The notes under the pieces: generated by a model
What the model saw: the letters and a program-made list of their open reading frames with translations, nothing else
Told to the model about the DNA's origin: nothing
Database searches by the model: none
Part shown: one piece after another, positions 4,201-59,226 of the stretch
Position numbering within the stretch: the stretch's first letter is position 1
Layout: every line of letters starts with the position of its first letter
Translations under genes and position numbers: made by a program
Origin: Scyliorhinus canicula
Lineage: Eukaryota
Direction of reading: 5' to 3'
Assembly (NCBI RefSeq): GCF_902713615.1
Contig: NC_052164.1
Location: forward strand, 81,381,830-81,445,829
Length of the DNA: 64,000 nt

Positions 4201-4541
4201 CAGCAGGGTAGCATGGTGGTTAGCATAAATGCTTCACAGCTCCAGGGTCCCAGGTTCGATTCCCGGCTGGGTCACTGTCTGTGTGGAGTCTGCACGTCCT
4301 CCCCCTGTGTGCGTGGGTTTCCTCCGGGTGCTCCGGTTTCCTCCCACAGTCCAAAGATGTGCGGGTTAGGTGGATTGGCCATGCTAAATTGCCCGTAGTG
4401 TCCAATTAAAAGTAAGGTTAAGGGGGGGTTGTTCGGTTACGGGTATAGGGTGGATCCGCGGGTTTGAGTAGGGTGATCATGGCTCGGCACAACATTGAGG
4501 GCCGAAGGGCCTGTTCTGTGCTGTACTGTTCTATGTTCTAT
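4201..4541 (+). mobile_element. HE1/V-SINE with CR1(HER1)-type tail (other copies 5873-6213, 18651-18983, 26058-26385, 34585-34890, 45802-46130 on +; 10860-11189, 38343-38639, 52446-52795 on -)
   Basis: tRNA-like head (ggttcgattcc), V-domain gtgggtttcctccgggtgctccggtttcctcccacagtccaaagatgtg, tail ggccgaagggcctgttctgtgctgtactgttctatgttctat. Confidence 0.9.
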
Positions 4542-5547: not shown

Positions 5548-6500
5548 AGATGTGCCACTGCACAGATCAAGACCACCTGCTGCCACTTCTGTAACATCGT
5601 CCATCCCCTATCTGTCCCTGCCTCAGCTCATCGGCTGCTGCAAATCTTATCCATGCCTTTGAATGCTAAACTCGGCCATTCCAACACCCTTTTATGAATC
5701 CCTCACACTCAGTAAATTTGAGGTCATCCAAAATTCTCCTGCCTTTGTTTACATTCACACAAAGGTCGATCCCTGTGCTGGTCAGCGCCATTGGCTCCTC
5801 GTTAAGCAATGCCTCTAATTTTTAAATTCTCGTCCTTTTTTCAAATCCCTCCATGGCCTTGCCCCCTCCATAGGGCAGCACGGTAGCATGATGGTTAGCG
5901 TAAATGCTTCACAGCTCCAGGGTCCCAGGTTCGGTTCCTGGCTGGGTCACTGTCTGTGCGGAGTCTGCACGTCCTCCCCGTGTGTGCTTGGGTTTCCTCC
6001 GGGTGCTCCGGTTTCCTCTCACAGTCCAAAGATGTGCGGGTTAGGTGGATTGGCCATGCTAAATTGCCCGTTGTGTCCTAAAAAGTAAGGTTAAGGGGGG
6101 GGTTGTTGGGTTACGGGTATAGGGTGGATACGTGGGTTTGAGTAGTGATCATTGCTCGGCACAACATCGAGGGCCGAAGGGCCTGTTCTGTGCTATACTG
6201 TTCTATGTTCTATATCATTATAATCTCTTTTAGGCTCACAACCCTCTGAGATACCTACACATTACTAATTCTGGCTGCAAGAACCCCCAATTTTAACTCC
6301 TCCACCAGTGATAGCTATCTTTTCATCTGCCAATGCCTTATGCTCTGAAAATCCTACCTTAAAACTTTCCACCCTGCTTGGAGATACTCTTTAAACCTAG
6401 GTCAAGTCATCGGTTTTTATATCTTATGTGGCTTGATGCCAAGTTTTTGTTTTCCAACACTCCTGTGAGGGACTTTGGGATGTGTTATTATGTTATACAT
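5548..6500 (+). mobile_element. L2 LINE 3' fragment, interrupted by V-SINE 5873-6213
   Basis: Decayed L2-like RT C-terminus (ccatgcctttg..actcggccattccaac..aaatttgaggtcatccaaaattc) and tail ctttgggatgtgttattatgtta. Confidence 0.55.
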
Positions 6501-12049: not shown

Positions 12050-13333
12050 GAATGCACTAAAATGGCTATACATGATGTAGATGTGGGAAATGCTGTTCCA
12101 ATTAAACAACATCCATATAGACTTAACTCGTTAAAATTGGCATAGGTTAACAAAGAAATTGAAAGTATGCTTAAAAATGGTATAATTGAAGTGGGTTGCA
12201 GCCAATGGAGCTCACCCATAGTGATGGTACCAAACCGGACGGTGCCCAACGGTTGTGTGTGAACTATAGAAAGGTTAATGCTGTTACAAGAACAGACTCT
12301 TATCCTAACCCACGTTTGGAGGATTGCATTGAAAAAGTGGGACAATCAGCTTTTATTTCCAAACTGGAGTTACTTAAAGGTTACTGGCAGGTACTTTTAT
12401 CCGAAAGGGCGAGGGAGATTTCAGCTTTTGTGACTCCAGGTGGTATATACTAATTCAAAGTTATGCCATTTGGCATGAAAAGCAGCCCAGCCACATTTCA
12501 ACGGTTAACTAACAATTTACCCAATTGTGCAGTATACATCGATGATCTGGTAATTTTCAGCCAGGCATGGAAAACATTTAAAATCATCTGATGGAGTTAT
12601 TCGATTGACATCAGATGGGTTTGGTGGTAAACCTAGCCAAAAGTGAATTTGGAAAAGCCCCAGTCACTTTCCTTGGCCATATAATTGGACAGGGTCGAAT
12701 GGTTCATGGGATGTGAAAACAAATGTTATTGGGGAGTTTCCAATACCCTCGACATGAAGGGAAATAATGTGATTTCTTGCCATGAGTGGATTCTACCGGA
12801 CATTTGTGCCAAATTTTAATAGTGTGGTTACTCTACTGAAGGACTTGCTGAAGAAACGTAGCAAATTTAAGTGGACAGCGGAGTGTCAACAGGCATTTGA
12901 CTGCCTGAAGGCTGTGTTGACCACTGCTCCTGTGTTAGCCATCCCAAATTATACCAAACCATTCAAAGTTGCTGTTGATGTAAGTGATGTGGGCATGGGT
13001 GCAGTGCTTCTACAAGACGATGACGACGGACTAGAGCGGCCTATTGGTTATTTTTCAAAGAAATTGAATTCTCATCAGAAAAAGTATTCGACGATTGAGA
13101 AGGAGACTTTGAGTTTGGTGCTGGCTTTGCAACATTTTCACTTTTACGTGACCAGCAATCCGTCTGACATCATTATATATACCGATCATAATCCATTGAC
13201 GTTTTTGGAGCGATTGCGGAATAACAATGTAAAACTGTTTCGCTGGAGTTTATTGTTGCAGCCATTTCATTTAAAAATAGTACATATGGCAGGACGAGAA
13301 AATGTGACAGCCAATGCTTTGTCACGAATGTGA
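12050..13333 (+). pseudogene. Gmr1 reverse transcriptase and RNase H
   Basis: PIKQHPYR, RLCVNYRKVN, LLKGYWQV, YIDD at 12535-12546, RNase H VDVSDVGMGAVL..YSTIEKETL..YTDHNPL. Confidence 0.9.
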
Positions 13334-24954: not shown

Positions 24955-25091
24955 GGCCGGCGCTGCCACTCCGCCCGACGGCAGCTTCGCAACAGGCCCC
25001 GCCCACACCCACCCTGTCGCAAAACGACATCCTCCTTGACTCCGCCCCCCAGCTGGTGTTGATGGTGCAACAGGGATTGTGCAAGTTCAAT
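24955..25091 (-). promoter_or_regulatory. REXO2 CpG promoter / 5' UTR with GC boxes
   Basis: CpG-rich, with gccccgccc (~24997) and ctccgccccc (~25040) immediately upstream of the ATG. Confidence 0.6.
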
Positions 25092-25811
25092 GGGCGAAAT
25101 TCTCCCCCCCCCACGACGGGTGGGAGAATAGCGGGAGGGCCTTCCCGACTTTTTTGACGCCCTCCCGCTATTCTCCCCCCCCCCCCGAAATCCCGACACG
25201 AATCGCTGCCGCCGTTTTTTTACGGCCGGCAGCGATTCACAGCTGTTAGAAGGGCCGAAGTCCCAGCCCTTTACGACCTTTTTACGAACGGCAAACACAC
25301 CTGGTCCTGCCATTCGTAAAAACGTCGTGACCACCTGGAAAAAAATAACCATGGCACCGATTGGCACGGCAGTACCACGGCAGTGCCAAGGGTGCCATGG
25401 GCCCGCGATCGGTGCCCACCGATCGCGGGCAGCGGGCCCGATGCCCGCGCACTATTTGTCCTTCCGCCGCCCCGCAGTATCAATACGCGGGGCGGCTGAG
25501 GGGCAACCCGGACCGCGCATGCGCGGGTTTCGCGCAAAAACGCGATGACGTCACCCGCGCATGCGCGGGTGGAGTCTTCCCACCTGCGCATGCGCGGCTG
25601 ACGTCATATGACGCGTCAGCCGGCGCTAAGTCCGACAAGCGGGCTTAACGATTTTCGTTAAGCCCGACTTGTCGGGGCCTCCGACGTCGGGCTGCTAGCC
25701 CCGACGGGGGACCAGAATCGGTCCCCCGTCGGGAAGGGGCGCGATGCCGTAAAACCCGCCCGGGTTTTACGGCAGTTTGACGATTTCTCCCGTTTTGGGA
25801 GAATTTCGCCC
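25092..25811 (+). mobile_element. PIF/Harbinger-type MITE, copy 1 (hairpin-array element)
   Basis: 15-bp TIR GGGCGAAATTCTCCC, 3-bp TSD AAT, no transposase, near-identical to 26581-27302 and 41899-42623. Confidence 0.88.
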
Positions 25812-25889
25812 AATACTTCTCATCAAATCTCAAAAGGTCTCACTAAGAATGTTGCTTTATGTTAACAATTACTGTCAAGTTTGCATATA

Positions 25890-27480
25890 AACACCATAAA
25901 CTAAATTATTTATTCAACAAATTATATATACATGCTATTATTCTTTATTCAGTAAATTATACACACACACCATAAATTCTTGTCTTTATTAAATAAATTA
26001 TACACACATTCTTATATATACACATACATTTGACCAGCGCAGACCCGATGGGCCAAAGGGCAGCACGGTAGCACAAGTGATTAGCACTGTGGCTTCACAG
26101 CGGCAGGATCCCAGGTTCGATTCCTTGCTGGGTCACTGTCTGTGCGGAGTCTGCACGTTCTCCCCATGTGTGCGTGGGTTTCCTCCGGATGCTCCGGTTT
26201 CCTCCCACAGTCCAAAGGTGTGTGGACTAGGTGGATTGGCTATGATAAATTGCCCTTAGTGACCAAAAAAAGGTTAAGAGGGTTTATTGGGTTACGAGGA
26301 TAGGGTGGAAGTGAGGGCTTAAGTGTGTTGGTGCAGACTCGATCGGCCAAATGGCCTCCTTCTGCACTGTATGTTCAATGTTCTGTGCTGCTGACCTCCA
26401 TGACATCATAAACTATATTCTTTATTCTATAAATTATACATACACGCCATCAACTATATTATTTATACAATGTATTTTATGTTCATACCATAAACTATAT
26501 TCCTCATCTAATGAATTATACATACACACCAGAAACTATATTATTTACACAATAAATTATACATACACACCAGACACTATGGGCGAAATTCTCCCCCCCC
26601 CACGACGGGTGGGAGAATAGCGGGAGGGCCTTCCCGACTTTTTTGACGCCCTCCCGCTATTCTCCCACCCCCCCGCCGAAATCCCGACACGAATCGCTGC
26701 CGCCGTTTTTTTACGGCCGGCAGCGATTCACAGCTGTTAGAAGGGCCGAAGTCCCAGCCCTTTACGACCTTTTTACGAACGGCAAACACACCTGGTCCTG
26801 CCATTCGTAAAAACGTCGTGACCACCTGGAAAAAAATAACCATGGCACCGATTGGCACGGCAGTACCACGGCCGTGCCAAGGGTGCCATGGGCCCGCGAT
26901 CGGTGCCCACCGATCGCGGGCAGCGGGCCCGATGCCCGCGCACTATTTGTCCTTCCGCCGCCCCGCAGTATCAATACGCGGGGCGGCTGAGGGGCAACCC
27001 GGACCGCGCATGCGCGGGTTTCGCGCAAAAACGCGATGACGTCACCCGCGCATGCGCGGGTGGAGTCTTCCCACCTGCGCATGCGCGGCTGACGTCATAT
27101 GACGCGTCAGCCGGCGCTAAGTCCGACAAGCGGGCTTAACGATTTTCGTTAAGCCCGACTTGTCGGGGCCTCCGACGTCGGGCTGCTAGCCCCGACGGGG
27201 GAGCAGAATCGGTCCCCCGTCGGGAAGGGGCGCGATGCCGTAAAACCCGCCCGGGTTTTACGGCAGTTTGACGATTTCTCCCGTTTTGGGAGAATTTCGC
27301 CCTATGTTCCTTATTTAATAAATTATACATACACACCAGAAACTATTATTTATCCTATAAATTGTACATACAGACCATGAAGTGTATAATTTATCCAATA
27401 AATTATTCATATACACCAAAAACCATATTATTTATTCAATAAATTATACATACACACCATAAGCTACATTATTTGTCCAG
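25890..27480. repeat. ~41-bp AT-rich minisatellite (aaactatattatttattcaataaattatacatacacaccat), interrupted by a V-SINE and MITE copy 2
   Basis: Degenerate units at 25890-26025, 26405-26580 and 27303-27480. Confidence 0.8.
26581..27302 (+). mobile_element. PIF/Harbinger-type MITE, copy 2
   Basis: Same TIRs; TSD TAT (26578-26580 / 27303-27305). Confidence 0.88.
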
Positions 27481-41130: not shown

Positions 41131-41386
41131 TATCTGTGCGATTCAGATATTGAATTAAGTTTATTGCCAAAAAGGGATGACAGGAAAGTGGATTTGAGAC
41201 CACACCCAGAGCAGCTTTGATAAAGAGTCATCCGACTCGAAACATTAGCTCCATTCTCTCTCCACAGATGCTGCCAGACCTGTTGAGATTGTCCAGTATT
41301 TTCTGCTTTTGTTTTAGCTTTGTTCTGATTGAATGGCAGAGCAGGCTCCAAGGGCTGAATGGACATCTACTGCTCCTAAATCCTAT

Positions 41387-42837
41387 GGGCGCGATTCTCC
41401 CATATGGGGAGAAATCGTAAGGCTGCCGTCAAATCCGGGCGGGTTTGACACCAGCCCCCCCCTTCCCGACCGGGAACCGATTCTGGTCCCCGGTCGGGGC
41501 TAGCAGCCCGACGCCGTAGGCTCCGGCAAGACGGGCTTAACGAAAATCGTTAAGCCCGCTTGCCGGAGTTAGCGCCGGCTGACGCGTCATATGACGTCAG
41601 CCGCGCATGCGCAGTTTGGAAGACTCCAACCCGCGCATGCGCGGGTGACGTCATCGCGTTTTTGCGCGAAACCCGCGCATGCGCGGGCCGGGTTGCCCCT
41701 CAGCCGCCCCGCGAATGGATACTGCGGGGCGGCGGAAGGACAAGTAGTGCGCGGGAATCGGGCCCGCTGCCCGCGATCGGTGCCCACCGATCGCGGGCCC
41801 ATGGCACCCTTGGCACGGCCGTGGTACTGCCGTGCCAATCGGTGCCATGGTTATTAATAGCGAGTTTGTGACGCCGTTTTTACGAACGGCATGACCAGGG
41901 GCGAAATTCTCCCCCCCCCCACGACGGGTGGGAGAATAGCGGGAGGGCCTTCCCGACTTTTTTGACGCCCTCCCGCTATTCTCCCACCCCCCCGCCGAAA
42001 TCCCGACACGAATCGCTGCCGCCGTTTTTTTACGGCCGGCAGCGATTCACAGCTGTTAGAAGGGCCGAAGTCCCAGCCCTTTACGACCTTTTTACGAACG
42101 GCAAACACACCTGGTCCTGCCGTTCGTAAAAAACGTCGTGACCACCTGGAAAAAAATAACCATGGCACCGATTGGCACGGCAGTACCACGGCCGTGCCAA
42201 GGGTGCCATGGGCCCGCGATCGGTGCCCACCGATCGCGGGCAGCGGGCCCGATGCCCGCGCACTATTTGTCCTTCCGCCGCCCCGCAGTATCAATACGCG
42301 GGGCGGCTGAGGGGCAACCCGAACCGCGCATGCGCGGGTTTCGCGCAAAAAACGCGATGATGTCACCCGCGCATGCGCGGGTGGAGTCTTCCCACCTGCG
42401 CATGCGCGGCTGACGTCATATGACGCGTCAGCCGGCGCTAAGTCCGACAAGCGGGTTTAACGATTTTCGTTAAGCCCGACTTGTCGGAGCCTCCGACGCC
42501 GGGCTGCTAGCCCCGACGGGGGACCAGAATCGGTCCCCCGTCGGGAAGGGGCGCGATGCCGTAAAACCCGCCCGGGTTTTACGGCAGTTTGACGATTTCT
42601 CCCGTTTTGGGAGAATTTCGCCCCAGGTGTGTTTGCCGTTCGTAAAAACGGCGGAAAGGGCTGGGACTTCGGCCCATCTAACAGCTGAGAATCGCTGCCG
42701 GCCGTAAAAAAACGGCGGCAGCGATTCGGGTCGGGACTTCGGCGGGGGGGTGGGAGAATAGCGGGAGGGCGGCAAAAATGTCGGAAAGGCCCTCCCGCTA
42801 TTCTCCCACCCGTCGTGGGGGGCGGAGAATTTCGCCC
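41387..42837 (-). mobile_element. Harbinger-type MITE, copy 3 (diverged subfamily, opposite orientation), containing nested copy 4
   Basis: TIRs GGGCGCGATTCTCC / GGAGAATTTCGCCC and TSD TAT; ~723 bp after removing the nested copy; inserted in a CR1-type tail. Confidence 0.85.
41899..42623 (+). mobile_element. Harbinger-type MITE, copy 4, nested in copy 3
   Basis: Perfect 15-bp TIRs; TSD CAG (41896-41898 / 42624-42626). Confidence 0.9.
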
Positions 42838-42989
42838 TATGTTCCTCAAGCACTCAGAGCAGAGAATTTAATTTTGAACAGTATTTTTTTAAATCACGCT
42901 GATATCCAATAAGCTGTTGCGCATTTTCTAAATGAAAACATGATTTAACATGTTAAAGATAACATGCATGCCAGGCCCTAAAGTCCAGG

Positions 42990-43544: not shown

Positions 43545-44032
43545 GTGGGCCAGGGCCTGTCGAGGCCTCTCCGCCTCGGGGTCTTCCCTTCTCCCGTCCC
43601 GACGGTTCCCGCTTGTTCCCCAGGGTAACCTGGGGCTGTTCAAACTCTATCCTGAATTCTCTTCATCTGGTGCGCGCGTTAACTGGGTCAGATTCAAATC
43701 TGCCATTTAAACCAGGAGAATGTTTGTGCTGCCAGCGGGAGAAAGTTTCCCAGAGAACAAATTTACAAAAAGAACCCCCTCCCTTTCTGACCAAGAGTCT
43801 TCCAGACTCGCCGGGGCTTCTCTCTCCACAAATGCTGCCAGACCTGCTGGGTTTATCCAACCACTTTCTGTTTTTAGTTCAGATTCACTGCTTGGCTTTA
43901 ACCTGTCTGGTTGCTTCATTAACTCCCCCAGCCACTTTGCAAGTCGATGGCTGTGTGTGTGTATGTGAACTGAAAATGTGTACCCGCTCTCTCTGCGTCT
44001 CACTTTCCCCACCCCTTTTGCTGTTTTGCCAG

Positions 44033-44195
44033 GCTGGCCCACTCCTGGCAGTAAAAATCCCCAAGGACAAGGATGGAAAATCAAAGCAGTTCGCGTTTGT
44101 GCATTTCAAACACGTGGAGTCGGTCCATTATGGAAAAGACTTGTTGAATGGGATACAACTGCATGGCAAGGCCATCAAGATCCAGTTCAGATCAG
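44033..44195 (+). CDS. RBM7: RBM7 exon 2
   Basis: 163 nt, AGPLLAVKIPKDKDGKSKQFAFVHFKHVESVHYGKDLLNGIQLHGKAIKIQFRS(G); RNP1. Confidence 0.95.
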
Positions 44196-45273
44196 GTGAG
44201 GAACGGTTCTCTTTCATGTTTCGCTTTGCAACTTATTTCCTGCTTTTACCAGGCGATGATTCCAATTCTAAAAGCAAGATACTGCGGACGCTGGAAACTG
44301 AAACAAAAACACATGATACTGGAAAAACGCAGCATGTTTGAAAGCATCTGTGGAGAGAGAGTAAAGTTAACCTTTATTGTAAATTTGTCACTCTTGATTT
44401 TTCCAGATCCGAGAGAATGTAAATCTGTTGCCAGGTGTCCATTATTTGAGCAGGTTGTAGATATTTCTGGTTGCATTTGTTGGAGGTGGATGGGATGGCA
44501 GGATAGCACTGTCACTTCACAGCGCAAGGGTCCGAGGTTCGATTCCCGGCTTGGGTCACTGTCTGTGTGGAGTCTGCATGTTCTCCCCGTGTCTGCGTGA
44601 GTTTCCTGATTTGCTTGTTAGGTGAATTGGACATTCTTGTGTACCCGAACAGGTGCCGGAGTGTGATAACTAGGGGCTTTTCACAGCAACCTCATTGCAG
44701 TGTTAATGTAAACCTACTTGTGACACTAATAACAATTATTATTAGTATTAACGACTGTGCAAAGATTCTTGTCAATATTGCAACCAATAATTTTGTAATT
44801 TGACTTAATTTTTTTTGACAATTGACCCAATTTAAAGAGGAGTTTGATATTTTTATCATTGTGGAAATATTTTGGACTTTAAACCAGATGTACCACCATA
44901 ATTCTGTGCACTCTTGAGCTACTAAGCCATCAGCTGATCTGGTGCTTTGCAAATGGACTGTGATAATGCTGTTACTACCAGTCATAACGTTTTACAACAC
45001 AGTAAGAGACTTCTTGGCCCATCGTGATTGTTGGGGTATGTCTTCTGCCAGCCATAAATTAGATGCTTTTAATTAGAGTGGAGATGCTGCTTCTGGTTTA
45101 AGCTGTTGCGGGAAAGTGGAATGTAAGTGAATTTGCAGGAAAGGCAAGCAGCAACATTGGTCGTTTTCTTCTATTGAGATCCACAGATTTAAAATGTATT
45201 TCCTAATGCAGGAAAATTTAAAATCAACTTTTGTATTTAATATTTGCAGTAATTTCCGGTCTTGTTTTCCTAG

Positions 45274-45367: not shown

Positions 45368-46574
45368 GTATAGACTTGTCAATTCTTTTATTCTTTGGTT
45401 TGTGCGTGATTCGGAATGTAATCTGTTATATCAGACTTGTAAAAATACAATTGCAATCCACTTCATTTGGTGGACCTTGCAAGGGTGTTAGTGCTGCTTT
45501 TTAGATTCTGAATATTAGAGTTGTCTTTTCTGTTTTGAATTCCTGAAGTTTTTCTGAGCTAGAGTTGGGAGCCATACTGATTATTGGCATTACTTGTTAT
45601 ATCTGGGGAATTTTGGATGATGTTTGTTTGGCACTTCCATACAATTGTATGACTATCTAGCCGCTGTAATTGTGTGGAAAATCTGACATAAAATCACTGT
45701 TTGCGGTTGTCTCAAACCATGTGCATCGCATTCGAAGTTAGTGCCTGCATCACAAGGCGACATTAACAAATGCACCAAATAGAGTTGTCACAACTCTGTT
45801 AGGGCCTCACGGTAGCATGGTGGTTAGCATCAATGCTTCACAGCTCCAGGGTCCCAGGTTCGATTCCCGGCTGGGTCACTGTCTGTGTGGAGTCTGCACG
45901 TCCTCCCCGTGTGTGCGTAGGTTTCCTCCGGGTGCTCCGGTTTCCTCCCAAAGTCCAAAGATGTGCGGGTTAGGTGGATTGGCCATGCTAAATTGCCCGT
46001 AGTGTAAGGTTAATGGGGGGATTGTTGGGTTACGGGTTACGTGGGTTTAAGTGGGGTGATCATTGCTCGGCACAACATCGAGGGCCGAAGGGCCTGTTCT
46101 GTGCTGTACTGTTCTATGTTCTATGTTCTACAAGAAACTTGAGACATTGAAGATATTACCAACGGTTAAGAGAATTTCAATACATTCAATCTTAGTTGCC
46201 ATTAATTTTCATCTCATTATATTCCATGCAGTTCATATGTTGTAAACGTAACTCCATGAATCAGATCTCTTAGATTCTGGAAACAGCTGAAATAGATGTG
46301 GGGGGGGGGGGGGGGGGGGTGCAGTGAGCTAAATCCTGCACTTTCTTTCCCAACCGAATAAACATACAAGTTAATTAGGACAATAGAAGTTGGGGATTAG
46401 AAGAATGATTTTAAGTTAAAACACCAGGCAGAAGCCTTGGAGGGGGGGAGAGGAGAAGAAGAAAATGTCCAAGTGATAAATGGTGGGATTGTGGAGTATT
46501 GGGGCTCTTCCTGTACCAATGCAATTTTGCAGCATTTCTGAATTGTATTTGAACAGATTCTTGCAGTCTGGGAC

Positions 46575-55999: not shown

Positions 56000-56287
56000 T
56001 GATAAAAATGGGTCCCTGGAAATAAAGTTTGAAAAACACTGTTCTCACCCAATGCCCACAATTGCCGATGTTGTATCAAAAAAGGACCTGCAGAAGCCCT
56101 GCAGCTTTGAGCACGACCAGAACATGCACATGTGCGCAGGATGATCCCCTTCAAACACTGAGTTCATCTATCCTCCACCCCATTGAAAAACGGACTCATT
56201 CTCCCCTTAATTATTATTATTTGTGAGGTGTGCTTGAAACACTACCTTTAGCTGAATGAGACTCAACCTTGCACAAGACGAGGTCAC

Positions 56288-59226
56288 GTTCACCCTCCTT
56301 AGTGGTAGGGGAATCTGCGGGTGCCAGGTCCCGGAGGGAGTTTGTGTCATGTCAGCCGTCGGGGTTTCTACGTATGCGTACTGGGTGTTGGTGTGGAGGA
56401 GCTGGACCCTCTCGACCAGGGGGTCAGACTTATGGCTCCTTACATGTTTGCGGATTAGGATGGGCCCCAGGACGGAGGCGAGACTCGGAGGTGGATTTCC
56501 TAAGGAAAACAAACAGGCGGTCATGAGGGGTCTCGTTCGTGGCTGTGCAAAGGAGGGACCAATGGAGTGGAGCGTGTCGGGGAGGACCTCCTGCCAGTGG
56601 GAAACTGAGAGATTCTGAGACCATAGGGCCAGGAGGACGGCATTCCATACCGTCGCGTTCTCCCTCTCCACCTGTCCGTTTCCCCGGGGGTTGTAACTGG
56701 TAGTCCTGCTCGAGGCGATGTCCTTACCGAGCAGGTACTGACGCAGTTCGTCGCTCACAAACGAGGAGCCCCGGTCACTGTGGACGTAAATGGGGAAACC
56801 GAACAAGGTGAAGATACTATGTAGGGCCTTAATGATGATGGCCGTTGTCATGTCGGGGCAGGGAATTGCAAAGGGGAAGCGGGAGAACTCGTCAACGACA
56901 TTGAGGAAATACGTGTTGCAGTTGGTAGAGGGGAGGGGCCCTTTGAAGTCGATACTGAGGTGCTCAAAGGGCTGGGATGCCTTCACCAGGTGGGCCTTAT
57001 CCGGTTGATAGAAGTGCGGCTTACACGCCACGCAGATTTGGCAGTCCCTGGTCATGGCTCTGACCTCCTCTGTGGAGTAGGGCAGGTTGCGGGCCTTGGT
57101 GTAGTGGAGAAGCCGGGTGGCAGAGGTCACCGTGATGTCCCAGAGTCGGTCATCTTGCGCGCTGGCGCATGTGCCACGGGACAGGGCATCTGGGGGCTTG
57201 TTGAGCTTCCCAGGATGATACACTATATTGTAATTATATGTGGAGAGTTCGATCCTCCACCTCAAGATTTTATCGTTCTTGATCTTGCCCCGCTGTGTAT
57301 TATCAAACATGAAGGCTACCGGCCGTTGGTCAGTGACGAGGGTAAGCCTCCTACCAGCGAGGTAGTGCCTCCAGTGCCGCACAGCTTCCACGATGGCTTG
57401 GGCTTCTTTTTCGACTGAGGAGTGTCGAATTTTGGAGGCGTTGAGGGTACGGGAGAAAATGTTACTGGCCTGCCCGCCTGATTGAGGGTGGCGGCGAGGG
57501 CGACCTCTGACACGTCGCTCTCCACCTGGAAGGGGATGGACTCGTCCACCGTGCACATGGCGGCTTTGGAAATATCTGCCTTGCTGTGGCTGAAGGCCTG
57601 GCGGGCCTCAGCCGGCAGTGGGAAGATGGTAGCTTTGATCAATGGGTGGGCTTTCTCCGCATAGTTGGGCACCCCTGGGCGTAATAGGAAAAGAACCCGA
57701 GGCACCCTCTTCAGGGCCTTGGGGCAGTGGGGGAGGGGGGAGTTGAACGGGGCGGCGCATACGTCCGGGTCAGGCCCTAGAACTCCATTATTCCACAACG
57801 CAGCCGAGGATGGCTAGTCTGGTTGTGCGGAAAACGCATTTCTCCTTGTTATAAGTTGAGGGTTGAGGCTTGGGCGGTTCTGGAGAAATTTCTGGCGGCG
57901 ACTGGCTTACAGTCGCGGTGAGATTTGGGAAGAGCGGGGTGGGTCGACCTTCAGGGTCGCGAGGCTACAAAGCGGTGAGGGGGGGTAGGGGCCCGCCGAG
58001 CTTCAGTGTCAGGCCCCTGAGGTTGCACTGGAATCCAGTCCCAAAAGGAGAGTAGCGCAGAGATCGGGGTAGTACGTATAGCTTGAAGTTTGCGTATTTG
58101 ATGCCTTGTATCGCGAGTTCGCGCAGTGTCCCCCCCGGATCTGCACTGAGTGTGATAGTTTGGAGTGCGGGGGAGATTTGGAGCGAACAGCGCCTTATCG
58201 TGTCTGGGTGAATGAAGCTCTCCATGCTCCCAGAGTCAAACAGGCAAGGCATTTTGTGTCCATTGACCCAGACGGTCACCATGGAGTTCCGGAGATGTTT
58301 TGGTTGTGACGGGTCGAGGGTGACCGCGCCGAGTTGCGGGTAGCCGGTGTAGTCGAGGTGATGGGGTCATCCCAAGGTGGCTGCCCCCGTGGGACGCATC
58401 TGTCGGGCGGCGAGGAAGATGGCGTCCAAGATGGTGGCCCCCATGAGTCGCACATGGCGGGCTGCATGGGAGACGGTGGCCAAGAAGCAGCCCCCGTGAG
58501 TCCACGCGTTTTGTGTGGAGTTGAAGATGGCTGCAGCCACGGACAACACGAGGCAGATGATGAGTCCGGAGGCGGCGGAGCCGGCAGGCACGCAGCCACA
58601 CTGCGGGGTCTGTGGGCCTGTGAGTCCGAGAGTCGGGCCTGCGATTTGGAGGATTTGGACCTGGCCAGGCAAACTTTGGCAAAGTGTCCCTTTTTGCCGC
58701 AGTCGCTGCAGTTCGTGTTCCGAGCCGGGCAGCGCTGCCTGGGGTGCTGTTGCTGACCGCAGAAATAGCAGGGTAGCCCCCCGGGCTGGGTGGGCAGCTG
58801 CGTGGCACATGCCTGGTCGGGGGTCCACGAGGGGGTCGCGTGATCGGACGGGAACGCGTTGAGGCTTTGGAATCCTACTCCTAAGGAGGTGGCTAGTTTT
58901 ATCATCTCTTCTAGGTCGAGGGCACCTTTCTTGATTAAATTGATGTGACCATCAATTCACGTGAGGCAGAGAGTTGAAGTGAACAGTGGTTTTAATCGGC
59001 TAGAACAGTGACTGCCTGCGACTGCTCTGCAAGTGAGAGCCGCCTACAGGGCAGCTGCTCTTTATACCTCCCCTCATGGGGGCGGAGCCAGTGGCAGAGC
59101 CCACAAGGGCACCAACATGATACATTCCGTGTCGTACAGTACAATGTCCAGAGGTGGAGCCCACTGGGCAACAGCATGATACAATGTAATACAGTGGTGA
59201 AAGGTTAGTACAATAATTTCACCACA
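56288..59226 (-). mobile_element. Ty3/Gypsy LTR retrotransposon with internal deletions (5' LTR 58941-59226)
   Basis: gag with two zinc knuckles (CYFCG..HPRQRC, CSDCGKKGHFAKVC), protease LFDSGS, RNase H (ESDVSEVA, HSSVEKEA, TDQ), integrase (IDFKGPLP, HSDRG, GNGQVERE), PPT-like ggagggtgaa at ~56290. Most of RT is missing. Confidence 0.88.

Follow-up and report, generated by a model that had tools for sequence, protein, structure and literature searches.

A probable Harbinger-type MITE of the catshark with a chain of unrelated palindromes that is kept in two abundant subfamilies

A stretch of 720 bp in the genome of the catshark Scyliorhinus canicula is crowded with short inverted repeats, and raises the questions of what kind of sequence it is, whether its capacity for self-pairing is maintained and, if so, whether the palindromes work as hairpins in DNA, as binding sites or as RNA. 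All positions given here refer to the window, that is, the whole stretch of DNA that was analysed (64,000 nt, without any N). The stretch of interest, called c1 below, occupies 25092-25811 and is bounded by perfect 15-bp TIRs, GGGCGAAATTCTCCC at 25092-25106 on the plus strand and its counterpart at 25797-25811 on the minus strand, with the TSD AAT on either side (25089-25091 on the left, 25812-25814 on the right). Matches to the TIR pattern number eight in the 64,000-nt window against 0.10 expected, and they mark four copies. The second copy, c2 (26581-27302, plus strand, 722 bp), is 99% identical to c1 and has the TSD TAT. The third, c3 (41899-42623, plus strand, 725 bp), is 98% identical and has the TSD CAG; it is nested within the fourth copy. 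The latter, c4, has the opposite orientation to c1-c3 and is split by the c3 insertion into a right-hand part of 512 bases (41387-41898, minus strand) and a left-hand part of 211 bases (42627-42837, minus strand), with the TSD TAT at 41384-41386 and 42838-42840. Identity among c1-c3 is 98-99%, whereas c4 appears to belong to a second subfamily and differs from them by 57 substitutions and one 1-nt insertion (92% identity). The copies in the window adjoin gene starts.

The window copies are genuine insertions, as indicated by three observations. First, c2 sits in phase within a 41-bp AT-rich tandem array, and excising c2 together with one copy of its TSD restores the phase of the array. Second, contigs of two public runs bridge 41894 to 42623 and so represent c4-type copies that lack c3, which demonstrates that uninterrupted copies of this type exist. 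Third, no Pfam domain was found in the ORFs overlapping the copies, and these ORFs are not common to the copies. The abundance of the family was assessed with Logan contigs of four public runs, which were aligned to 41300-42900, leaving out contigs of less than 93% likeness. The DNA run of one species contributed 4097 aligned contig pieces and the DNA run of a second species 1087. Over the c3 part as well as the c4 part, the summed word depth, which is not to be read as a copy number, reached 1e4-1e5. Further copies were sought by exact pattern in metagenome contigs and in contigs of prokaryotic genomes, with no matches. The segment 25092-25811 is a copy of a DNA transposon of MITE size, without coding capacity and with a very high copy number, that is present in two shark species. 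Copies of 720-725 bp with 15-bp TIRs and, in all four cases, 3-bp TSDs are typical of MITEs, as are homogeneous subfamilies at high copy number, seen here in the contig pieces and in the likeness of c1-c3. The copies are also rich in CpG, with an observed/expected ratio of 1.22-1.26 within all four compared to 0.30-0.67 in the flanks; the diverged c4 retains 90 CpGs (ratio 1.22). The preliminary description of this locus, according to which it is a MITE of about 720 bp with 15-bp TIRs, intact CpGs and three near-identical copies that speak for a young element, is thus borne out by the perfect TIRs, the 3-bp TSDs, the absence of coding capacity, the CpG ratios and the identity of c1-c3.

Short TIRs starting with GGG and 3-bp TSDs with A or T at the central position are features of the PIF/Harbinger superfamily (PMC2213677, PMC2836001). 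The TSDs of c1-c4 (AAT, TAT, CAG and TAT) have a central A or T in four of four cases, and none of them is TWA. The zebrafish element Harbinger3_DR is reported to integrate into the palindromic consensus AAACACCWGGTCTTT, with CWG within it (PMC3016246). The empty site of c3 agrees with this consensus at 12 of 15 positions, a level reached by only nine of the 63,985 15-mers of the window (frequency 1.4e-4). This site within c1, c2 and c3 themselves, at 25295, 26786 and 42105, accounts for three of the nine; in c1 it comprises 25295-25309 (ACACACCTGGTCCTG, the loop of hairpin 3 and the first bases of its right arm), and it was into the corresponding site of c4 that c3 inserted. The other three insertion sites agree with the consensus at 9, 8 and 6 of 15 positions. 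The GGG-TIRs, the length of the TSDs and the nested site of c3 all agree with the assignment to PIF/Harbinger that had been proposed earlier. Within the 64-kb window these TIRs are not accompanied by any autonomous element, transposase or Myb-like partner, and a Pfam search of its longest ORFs returned no Harbinger transposase, the only hits being fragments of LTR-retrotransposon pol (RNase H, integrase) and an RRM exon. Very probably the element depends for its mobility on a trans-acting transposase of PIF/Harbinger type whose target preference resembles that of Harbinger3_DR, a partner that we infer from the ends and the target sites.

About 12-14 unrelated palindromes, in which nearly all pairs are Watson-Crick, form an ordered chain that makes up the body of the element and surrounds a conserved CpG-island-like motif cluster. 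Perfect inverted repeats whose arms measure 10 nt or more and whose loops do not exceed 35 nt number 12 in c1, compared to an average of 0.055 in dinucleotide shuffles of the sequence, none of which has more than 1. The fold computed for single-strand DNA has an energy of -266.5 kcal/mol compared to -145.8 +/- 5.7 for the shuffles (z = -21), and 69% of the bases (about 248 pairs) are in local helices. Starting from the left end, hairpin 1 (25118-25181) has arms of 23 nt at 25118-25140 and 25159-25181, which are 96% complementary (19 perfect), bear the TIR-inner motif GGGAGAAT / ATTCTCCC and enclose an 18-nt loop. Hairpin 2 (25200-25238) consists of 12-nt perfect arms and a T-rich loop of 15 nt. 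The 21-nt arms of hairpin 3 (25273-25328) are 90% complementary in c1, with 20 perfect in c4. Hairpin 4 (25349-25400) combines perfect outer arms of 10 nt (25349-25358 and 25391-25400) with an inner repeat (25361-25373 and 25377-25389), and is directly followed by hairpin 5 (25401-25430) with 14-nt perfect arms and a loop of only 2 nt. Hairpin 6 (25456-25506) is less regular, its 20-nt arms being 85% complementary (10 perfect). The central CpG-rich motif cluster (25513-25607) forms the largest palindrome, with arms of 28 nt at 25545-25572 and 25580-25607 and an alternative pairing between 25513-25528 and 25553-25568. Towards the right end follow hairpin 9 (25632-25675; arms of about 20 nt, one bulge), hairpins 10 (25700-25733) and 11 (25745-25774), both with 14-nt perfect arms, and a subterminal hairpin TCTCCC / GGGAGA (25785-25811, minus strand) which continues into the right TIR. 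All ten inverted repeats listed when at least ten had been claimed were recovered, either exactly or shifted by a few bases.

The hairpins are mutually unrelated, as in a self-BLAST of the element each palindrome matched only its own arms, with the exception of the triple CCGCGCATGCGCGG. The possibility of a whole-element foldback was considered and rejected: the local inverted matches in the self-BLAST are 27-66 nt long, and end-to-end pairing is confined to the 15-bp TIRs. Whole-element palindromic MITEs and foldback elements such as Made1 / mir-548 precursors are likewise DNA transposons without autonomy for which strong self-pairing is predicted (PMC1784062). In foldback or Made1-type MITEs, however, the two halves pair as one long hairpin, whereas the catshark element pairs locally in many units.

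The diverged copy c4 allows the maintenance of the chain to be assessed. Its substitutions were scored against a local minimum-energy structure computed for the consensus of c1-c3, in an alignment that consists of the four window copies, one of them diverged. Substitutions affect 27 of the 496 paired positions (5.4%) and 30 of the 226 unpaired positions (13.3%), so that the stems carry 2.4-fold fewer substitutions than the unpaired parts (Fisher P = 5e-4). The preliminary description had named a lack of compensatory changes among diverged copies as evidence against its view; instead, four compensatory double changes were found in c4, all of them still Watson-Crick, where 0.48 were expected (P ~ 0.001). 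They are located at 25276/25325 in hairpin 3 (A:T in c1-c3, C:G in c4), 25635/25672 in hairpin 9 (A:T to G:C, in the same order), 25706/25727 in hairpin 10 (G:C to C:G) and 25751/25768 in hairpin 11 (A:T to C:G). Broken pairs number 15 in c4 compared to 30.6 expected. For these expectations, the substitutions of c4 were moved at random among positions with the identical base. As a control, the 3' partners were slid by 1-3 columns, and this left 0-1 compensatory pairs. When c4 is folded by itself, the predicted structure contains 250 pairs, of which 200 occur in the consensus structure as well; 15 consensus pairs are lost in c4 and 12 pairs are gained that c1-c3 lack. The fold of c4 (-280.7 kcal/mol, z = -15) is in fact slightly better than that of c1, and the perfect inverted repeats of c4 likewise number 12, the arms of some being longer (23, 20 and 17 nt). 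The earlier claim that a diverged copy keeps the hairpins is thus true for c4. The broader claim of a maintained structure holds insofar as the hairpins are kept despite sequence change, as seen in the stem deficit and the four compensations; as to its cause, selection is not separated by these data from template-switch mutation.

The differences of c4 are not scattered evenly. There are 23 gaps of 3 nt or less between neighbouring differences where 13.1 were expected (P = 2e-4), and 43 of the 57 substitutions are transversions. With each clump taken as one event, unpaired parts and stems would differ roughly 1.6-fold, by our own estimate. The loop of hairpin 5, CC in c1-c3, reads GG in c4, as would be expected of a loop flip. 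Whether the other loop and spacer differences of c4 could be inversions of the c1 loops as well was checked by eye on the alignment, and this explanation was rejected, as it fits hairpin 5 only. In one stem of the central cluster, a base is inserted in one arm between the subfamilies and is accompanied by a matched re-pairing in the other.

The contigs also bear on the status of c4. Out of its 58 differences, a single one, a CpG to TpG change at 41450, is contradicted by all contigs, and three further ones are polymorphic among them. The list of positions that vary among the contigs includes none of the eight compensatory ones, absence from this list being no proof of identity. High-depth variants at 41529 and 41530 in c4-type contigs fall on stem positions and have no listed change at the partner. 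Judged by the c4-type letters present in many copies of two species, c4 looks like a member of a second abundant subfamily and not like an old decayed copy. Since these letters are carried by many copies in both species, the paired changes appear to have arisen in spreading lineages. The private stem changes of c1, c2 and c3, in contrast to those paired changes, are all uncompensated. In c1 a C to A change in hairpin 4 breaks one inner pair. The private change of c2, C to G in hairpin 10, is a variant found also in about a fifth of the contig depth. Several private changes occur in c3, two of them CpG transitions, and none is compensated.

How can a chain of hairpins be kept through 8% divergence in lineages that spread, and decay in the copies that stay? 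We put at close to an even chance, perhaps slightly below, the proposition that the palindromes act as DNA and not as RNA, and that self-pairing is a cis feature of the spreading lineages. According to this model the element would self-pair, as single-strand hairpins or as extruded cruciforms, during excision, gap-repair copying or replication. Its arms would be re-matched by intra-strand template switching, giving paired changes in one step. Fewer descendants would come from copies or masters whose pairing is lost, which amounts to lineage selection, and resident copies would merely decay. A combination of the two processes is favoured, in which template switching supplies the paired changes and lineage selection removes the masters without pairing. 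What speaks against this model is that hairpins are not known to be required at any step of PIF/Harbinger transposition.

The strongest competing explanation keeps the first of these processes and dispenses with the second. The hairpin chain could be a pure mutational by-product of fold-back or template-switch synthesis, during repair in the course of amplification or during ordinary replication, with no cis function and with each paired change a single templated event. We regard this as rather unlikely, yet much of the substitution pattern is what it predicts. Template switching yields perfect stems, compensatory changes and loop inversions, and footprints of this sort, including one-step compensation and stem extension, have been documented (Monttinen and Loytynoja 2022, PMC8794818); c4 compared to c1-c3 presents the same picture, with the apparently flipped loop of hairpin 5, three of the four compensations being double transversions, the clumping and the excess of transversions, and the matched indel-type changes in the stem of the NRF1 cluster. 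Template switching is, however, a mutational mechanism and not an element family, and taken alone it leaves the lower substitution density of the stems unexplained. Copying from arm to arm should not in itself lower the rate per site, and therefore the stem deficit, together with only half the expected number of broken pairs, counts against a pure by-product. So do the private changes of resident copies, which stay uncorrected, and the persistence of about 12 independent palindromes in both abundant subfamilies.

A more specific version of the functional model was also considered. Here a vertebrate element of PIF/Harbinger type would need the hairpin chain as a cis structure when it is mobilised or copied, at a step that involves single strands or cruciforms, and the NRF1/E2F/CRE cluster would keep the copies unmethylated and available for this step, so that the element would represent a eukaryotic DDE counterpart of the hairpin dependence of bacterial REPIN and IS200-type elements. 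This proposal is an unlikely one in our estimation. The closest functional analogues are the REPINs, bacterial REP doublets served by RAYT transposases, which resemble the catshark element in being short non-coding mobile DNA with a kept capacity for hairpins. In REPINs it is this capacity rather than the exact spacer that is kept, and compensatory changes are common on both sides (PMC3116915). The likeness is one of function only: REPINs are single hairpins of bacteria, have neither TIRs nor TSDs and are moved single-stranded by HUH-type enzymes, whereas the catshark element, compared to REPIN and IS200-type (HUH, Y1) elements, resides in a vertebrate host and has DDE-type TIRs, TSDs and a dozen hairpins.

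Among eukaryotic elements, Tourist-like MITEs and other non-autonomous PIF/Harbinger elements (mPing, the zebrafish derivatives of Harbinger3_DR) are alike in their length of less than 800 bp, lack of coding sequence, GGG-TIRs, 3-bp TSDs with a central A or T, and high copy number. What sets the catshark element apart from Tourist-like MITEs is the presence of about 12 unrelated, co-varying palindromes and of an NRF1/E2F/CRE cluster, and the fact that none of its four TSDs is the classical TWA. A literature search found no description of such an architecture, nor of a matching shark or catshark family. As a probable Harbinger-type MITE the element is of a known kind, and its architecture is unusual and seems not to have been described before. 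The common view of MITEs is that they are deletion derivatives, passive in nature, of which nothing but the ends is important. In the catshark family, whose copies run into the thousands in two shark species, about two thirds of the interior is self-pairing and survives the divergence between the subfamilies via paired changes. Should selection act on the pairing, then a cut-and-paste transposon of the DDE type relies on secondary structure in its DNA; if the pairing is a by-product, the family constitutes a large natural record of template-switch mutation in the vertebrate germline. In either case its copies spread CpG-island-like NRF1/E2F/CRE clusters and palindromes prone to stall replication forks through the genome.

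The motif content of the element suggests a further explanation, in which no hairpin forms at all. The palindromes would be dyad-symmetric sites in duplex DNA for dimeric proteins (NRF1, CREB/ATF, E2F, the transposase or a Myb-like partner), and the element would mimic a CpG island, which either keeps the copies unmethylated and accessible or makes them donors of promoters and enhancers. The central cluster contains the NRF1-type motif GCGCATGCGC three times (25515, 25557 and 25586), the CRE motif TGACGTCA twice (25546 and 25599) and one E2F-type motif, TTTCGCGC (25528), and all six are kept in both subfamilies. With 3 substitutions in 120 nt (consensus 401-520), the cluster is among the parts that diverged least between them. 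In this comparison the effect of the motifs and that of pairing are confounded, the cluster being also the largest palindrome. The high CpG ratio inside the copies relative to the flanks would fit such a role, as would the short motifs outside the cluster: near the ends, the octamer from the inner part of the TIR (ATTCTCCC / GGGAGAAT) is present at four places, in either orientation (element positions 8, 31, 79 and 706), and CGTAAAA occurs five times. However, most arms are 12-23 nt long and the loops extend up to 32 nt, which is far beyond known dimer sites, and there is no motif common to the hairpins. Moreover, the compensations preserve self-complementarity and yet alter both half-sites, which a sequence-specific dimer would not tolerate unless it had co-evolved. 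As an account of the hairpin chain, dimer binding is improbable. The NRF1/E2F/CRE cluster may nevertheless serve accessibility.

That the element is transcribed and its stem-loops work as structured RNA or as precursors of small RNAs, an option of the preliminary description, is very unlikely in view of the base pairs themselves, 97-98% of which are Watson-Crick on both strands. No strand asymmetry was observed, as the fold energies are alike and G:T pairs number 5-7 on the top and 8-12 on the bottom strand (2-4% of pairs), and the three double transversions among the compensations have no wobble intermediate. Hairpin 1 and the NRF1/CRE hairpin do have the size of pre-miRNAs, with 23-nt arms around an 18-nt loop in the former and 28-nt arms in the latter. 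Substrates of Drosha and Dicer, though, need longer arms than most of those present here, which measure 12-14 nt with loops of 2-6 nt. In Rfam no family reached its gathering score, the best match being mir-328 with 31.7 bits against a threshold of 70, and all matches were to generic hairpins. Element sequence in both orientations does occur in contigs of runs guessed to be RNA, one of them with SMART cDNA adapters, but presence in cDNA is expected of passengers in introns and UTRs for a family with thousands of copies. Taken together, the Watson-Crick pairs on both strands, the double transversions, the sub-threshold matches in Rfam and the expected passenger cDNA point to DNA rather than RNA features. 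Four junctions with cDNA adapters were noted, including those at the element termini 41386/41387 and 42623, and all are located at (A)TGGG. Their interpretation as 5' ends of RNA was rejected, as (A)TGGG is the 3' end of the SMART oligo and strand invasion by this template-switch oligo is the likely origin.

The published palindromic 15-bp target of the zebrafish transposon Harbinger3_DR (ACACACCTGGTCCTG) was found to have a 12/15 match inside the putative PIF/Harbinger-type MITE itself. It runs from the loop into the right arm of one palindrome, hairpin 3, located at 25273-25328 in c1. The match is at 25295-25309, 26786-26800 and 42105-42119 in c1, c2 and c3, respectively, the three 98-99% identical copies of this ~720-bp element, and only nine 15-mers of the window score at least 12/15 against the Harbinger3_DR target. 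The point at which c3 is inserted in c4, a copy of the second subfamily in the opposite orientation (41387-41898 and 42627-42837), is exactly the target-like site of hairpin 3, with CAG as the TSD (window 41877-42648).

The host sequence of c2 is a 41-bp AT-rich tandem array, with flanking parts at 26403-26580 and 27317-27479, and the phase of the array was restored once c2 and one copy of the TSD were removed. Downstream of c1, from about 25860, there is an AT-rich stretch which, judged by its appearance, seems to resemble this array. Nine bases at the right junction, TAT followed by GTTCCT, are common to c2 (27303-27311) and c4 (42838-42846), the flanks being otherwise unlike. These common junction bases may reflect a family-specific target preference, unlike the Harbinger3_DR consensus.

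The element was also present in a second species. In the public DNA sequencing run from organism B (X10), 45% of the 31-mers sampled from the 1.6-kb stretch (41300-42900) were found, which is about the share of c3, and contigs of both element subfamilies exist in this run. Near-identical copies in two species suggest that the element was recently active in both, that substitution rates in sharks are slow, or that there was interspecies transfer.

In the contigs of another run, which carries SMART cDNA adapters and is presumed to be RNA (X14), the template-switch oligo was joined to the element only at (A)TGGG, namely at 41385, 41929, 42623 and 42662, and these sites include both termini of the element. 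The junctions, which could pass for transcription starts at the TIRs, are probably a strand-invasion artefact. The NRF1, CRE and E2F motifs of the element copies were confirmed. Downstream of the c4/c3 pair, at a distance of about 0.8 kb, is an ORF on the plus strand (43613-44341) with an RRM_1 domain (E = 7.5e-9).

Just upstream of c4, a separate high-copy repeat, seen in the stretch 41300-41362, has its end at about 41362; its word depth in X1, a DNA run from organism A, was about 8000, and ten contigs part ways at its end. Fragments of LTR-retrotransposon pol were located at 56207-57556 on the minus strand (RNase H and integrase core) and at 12782-13333 on the plus strand (RT-RNase H). A dispersed repeat of about 200 bp, unrelated to the MITE (families D2/D5/D7; 4-7 copies, 81-97% alike), occurs at 4204-4401, 5879-6076, 26065-26277 and 45808-46020, one copy sitting between c1 and c2.
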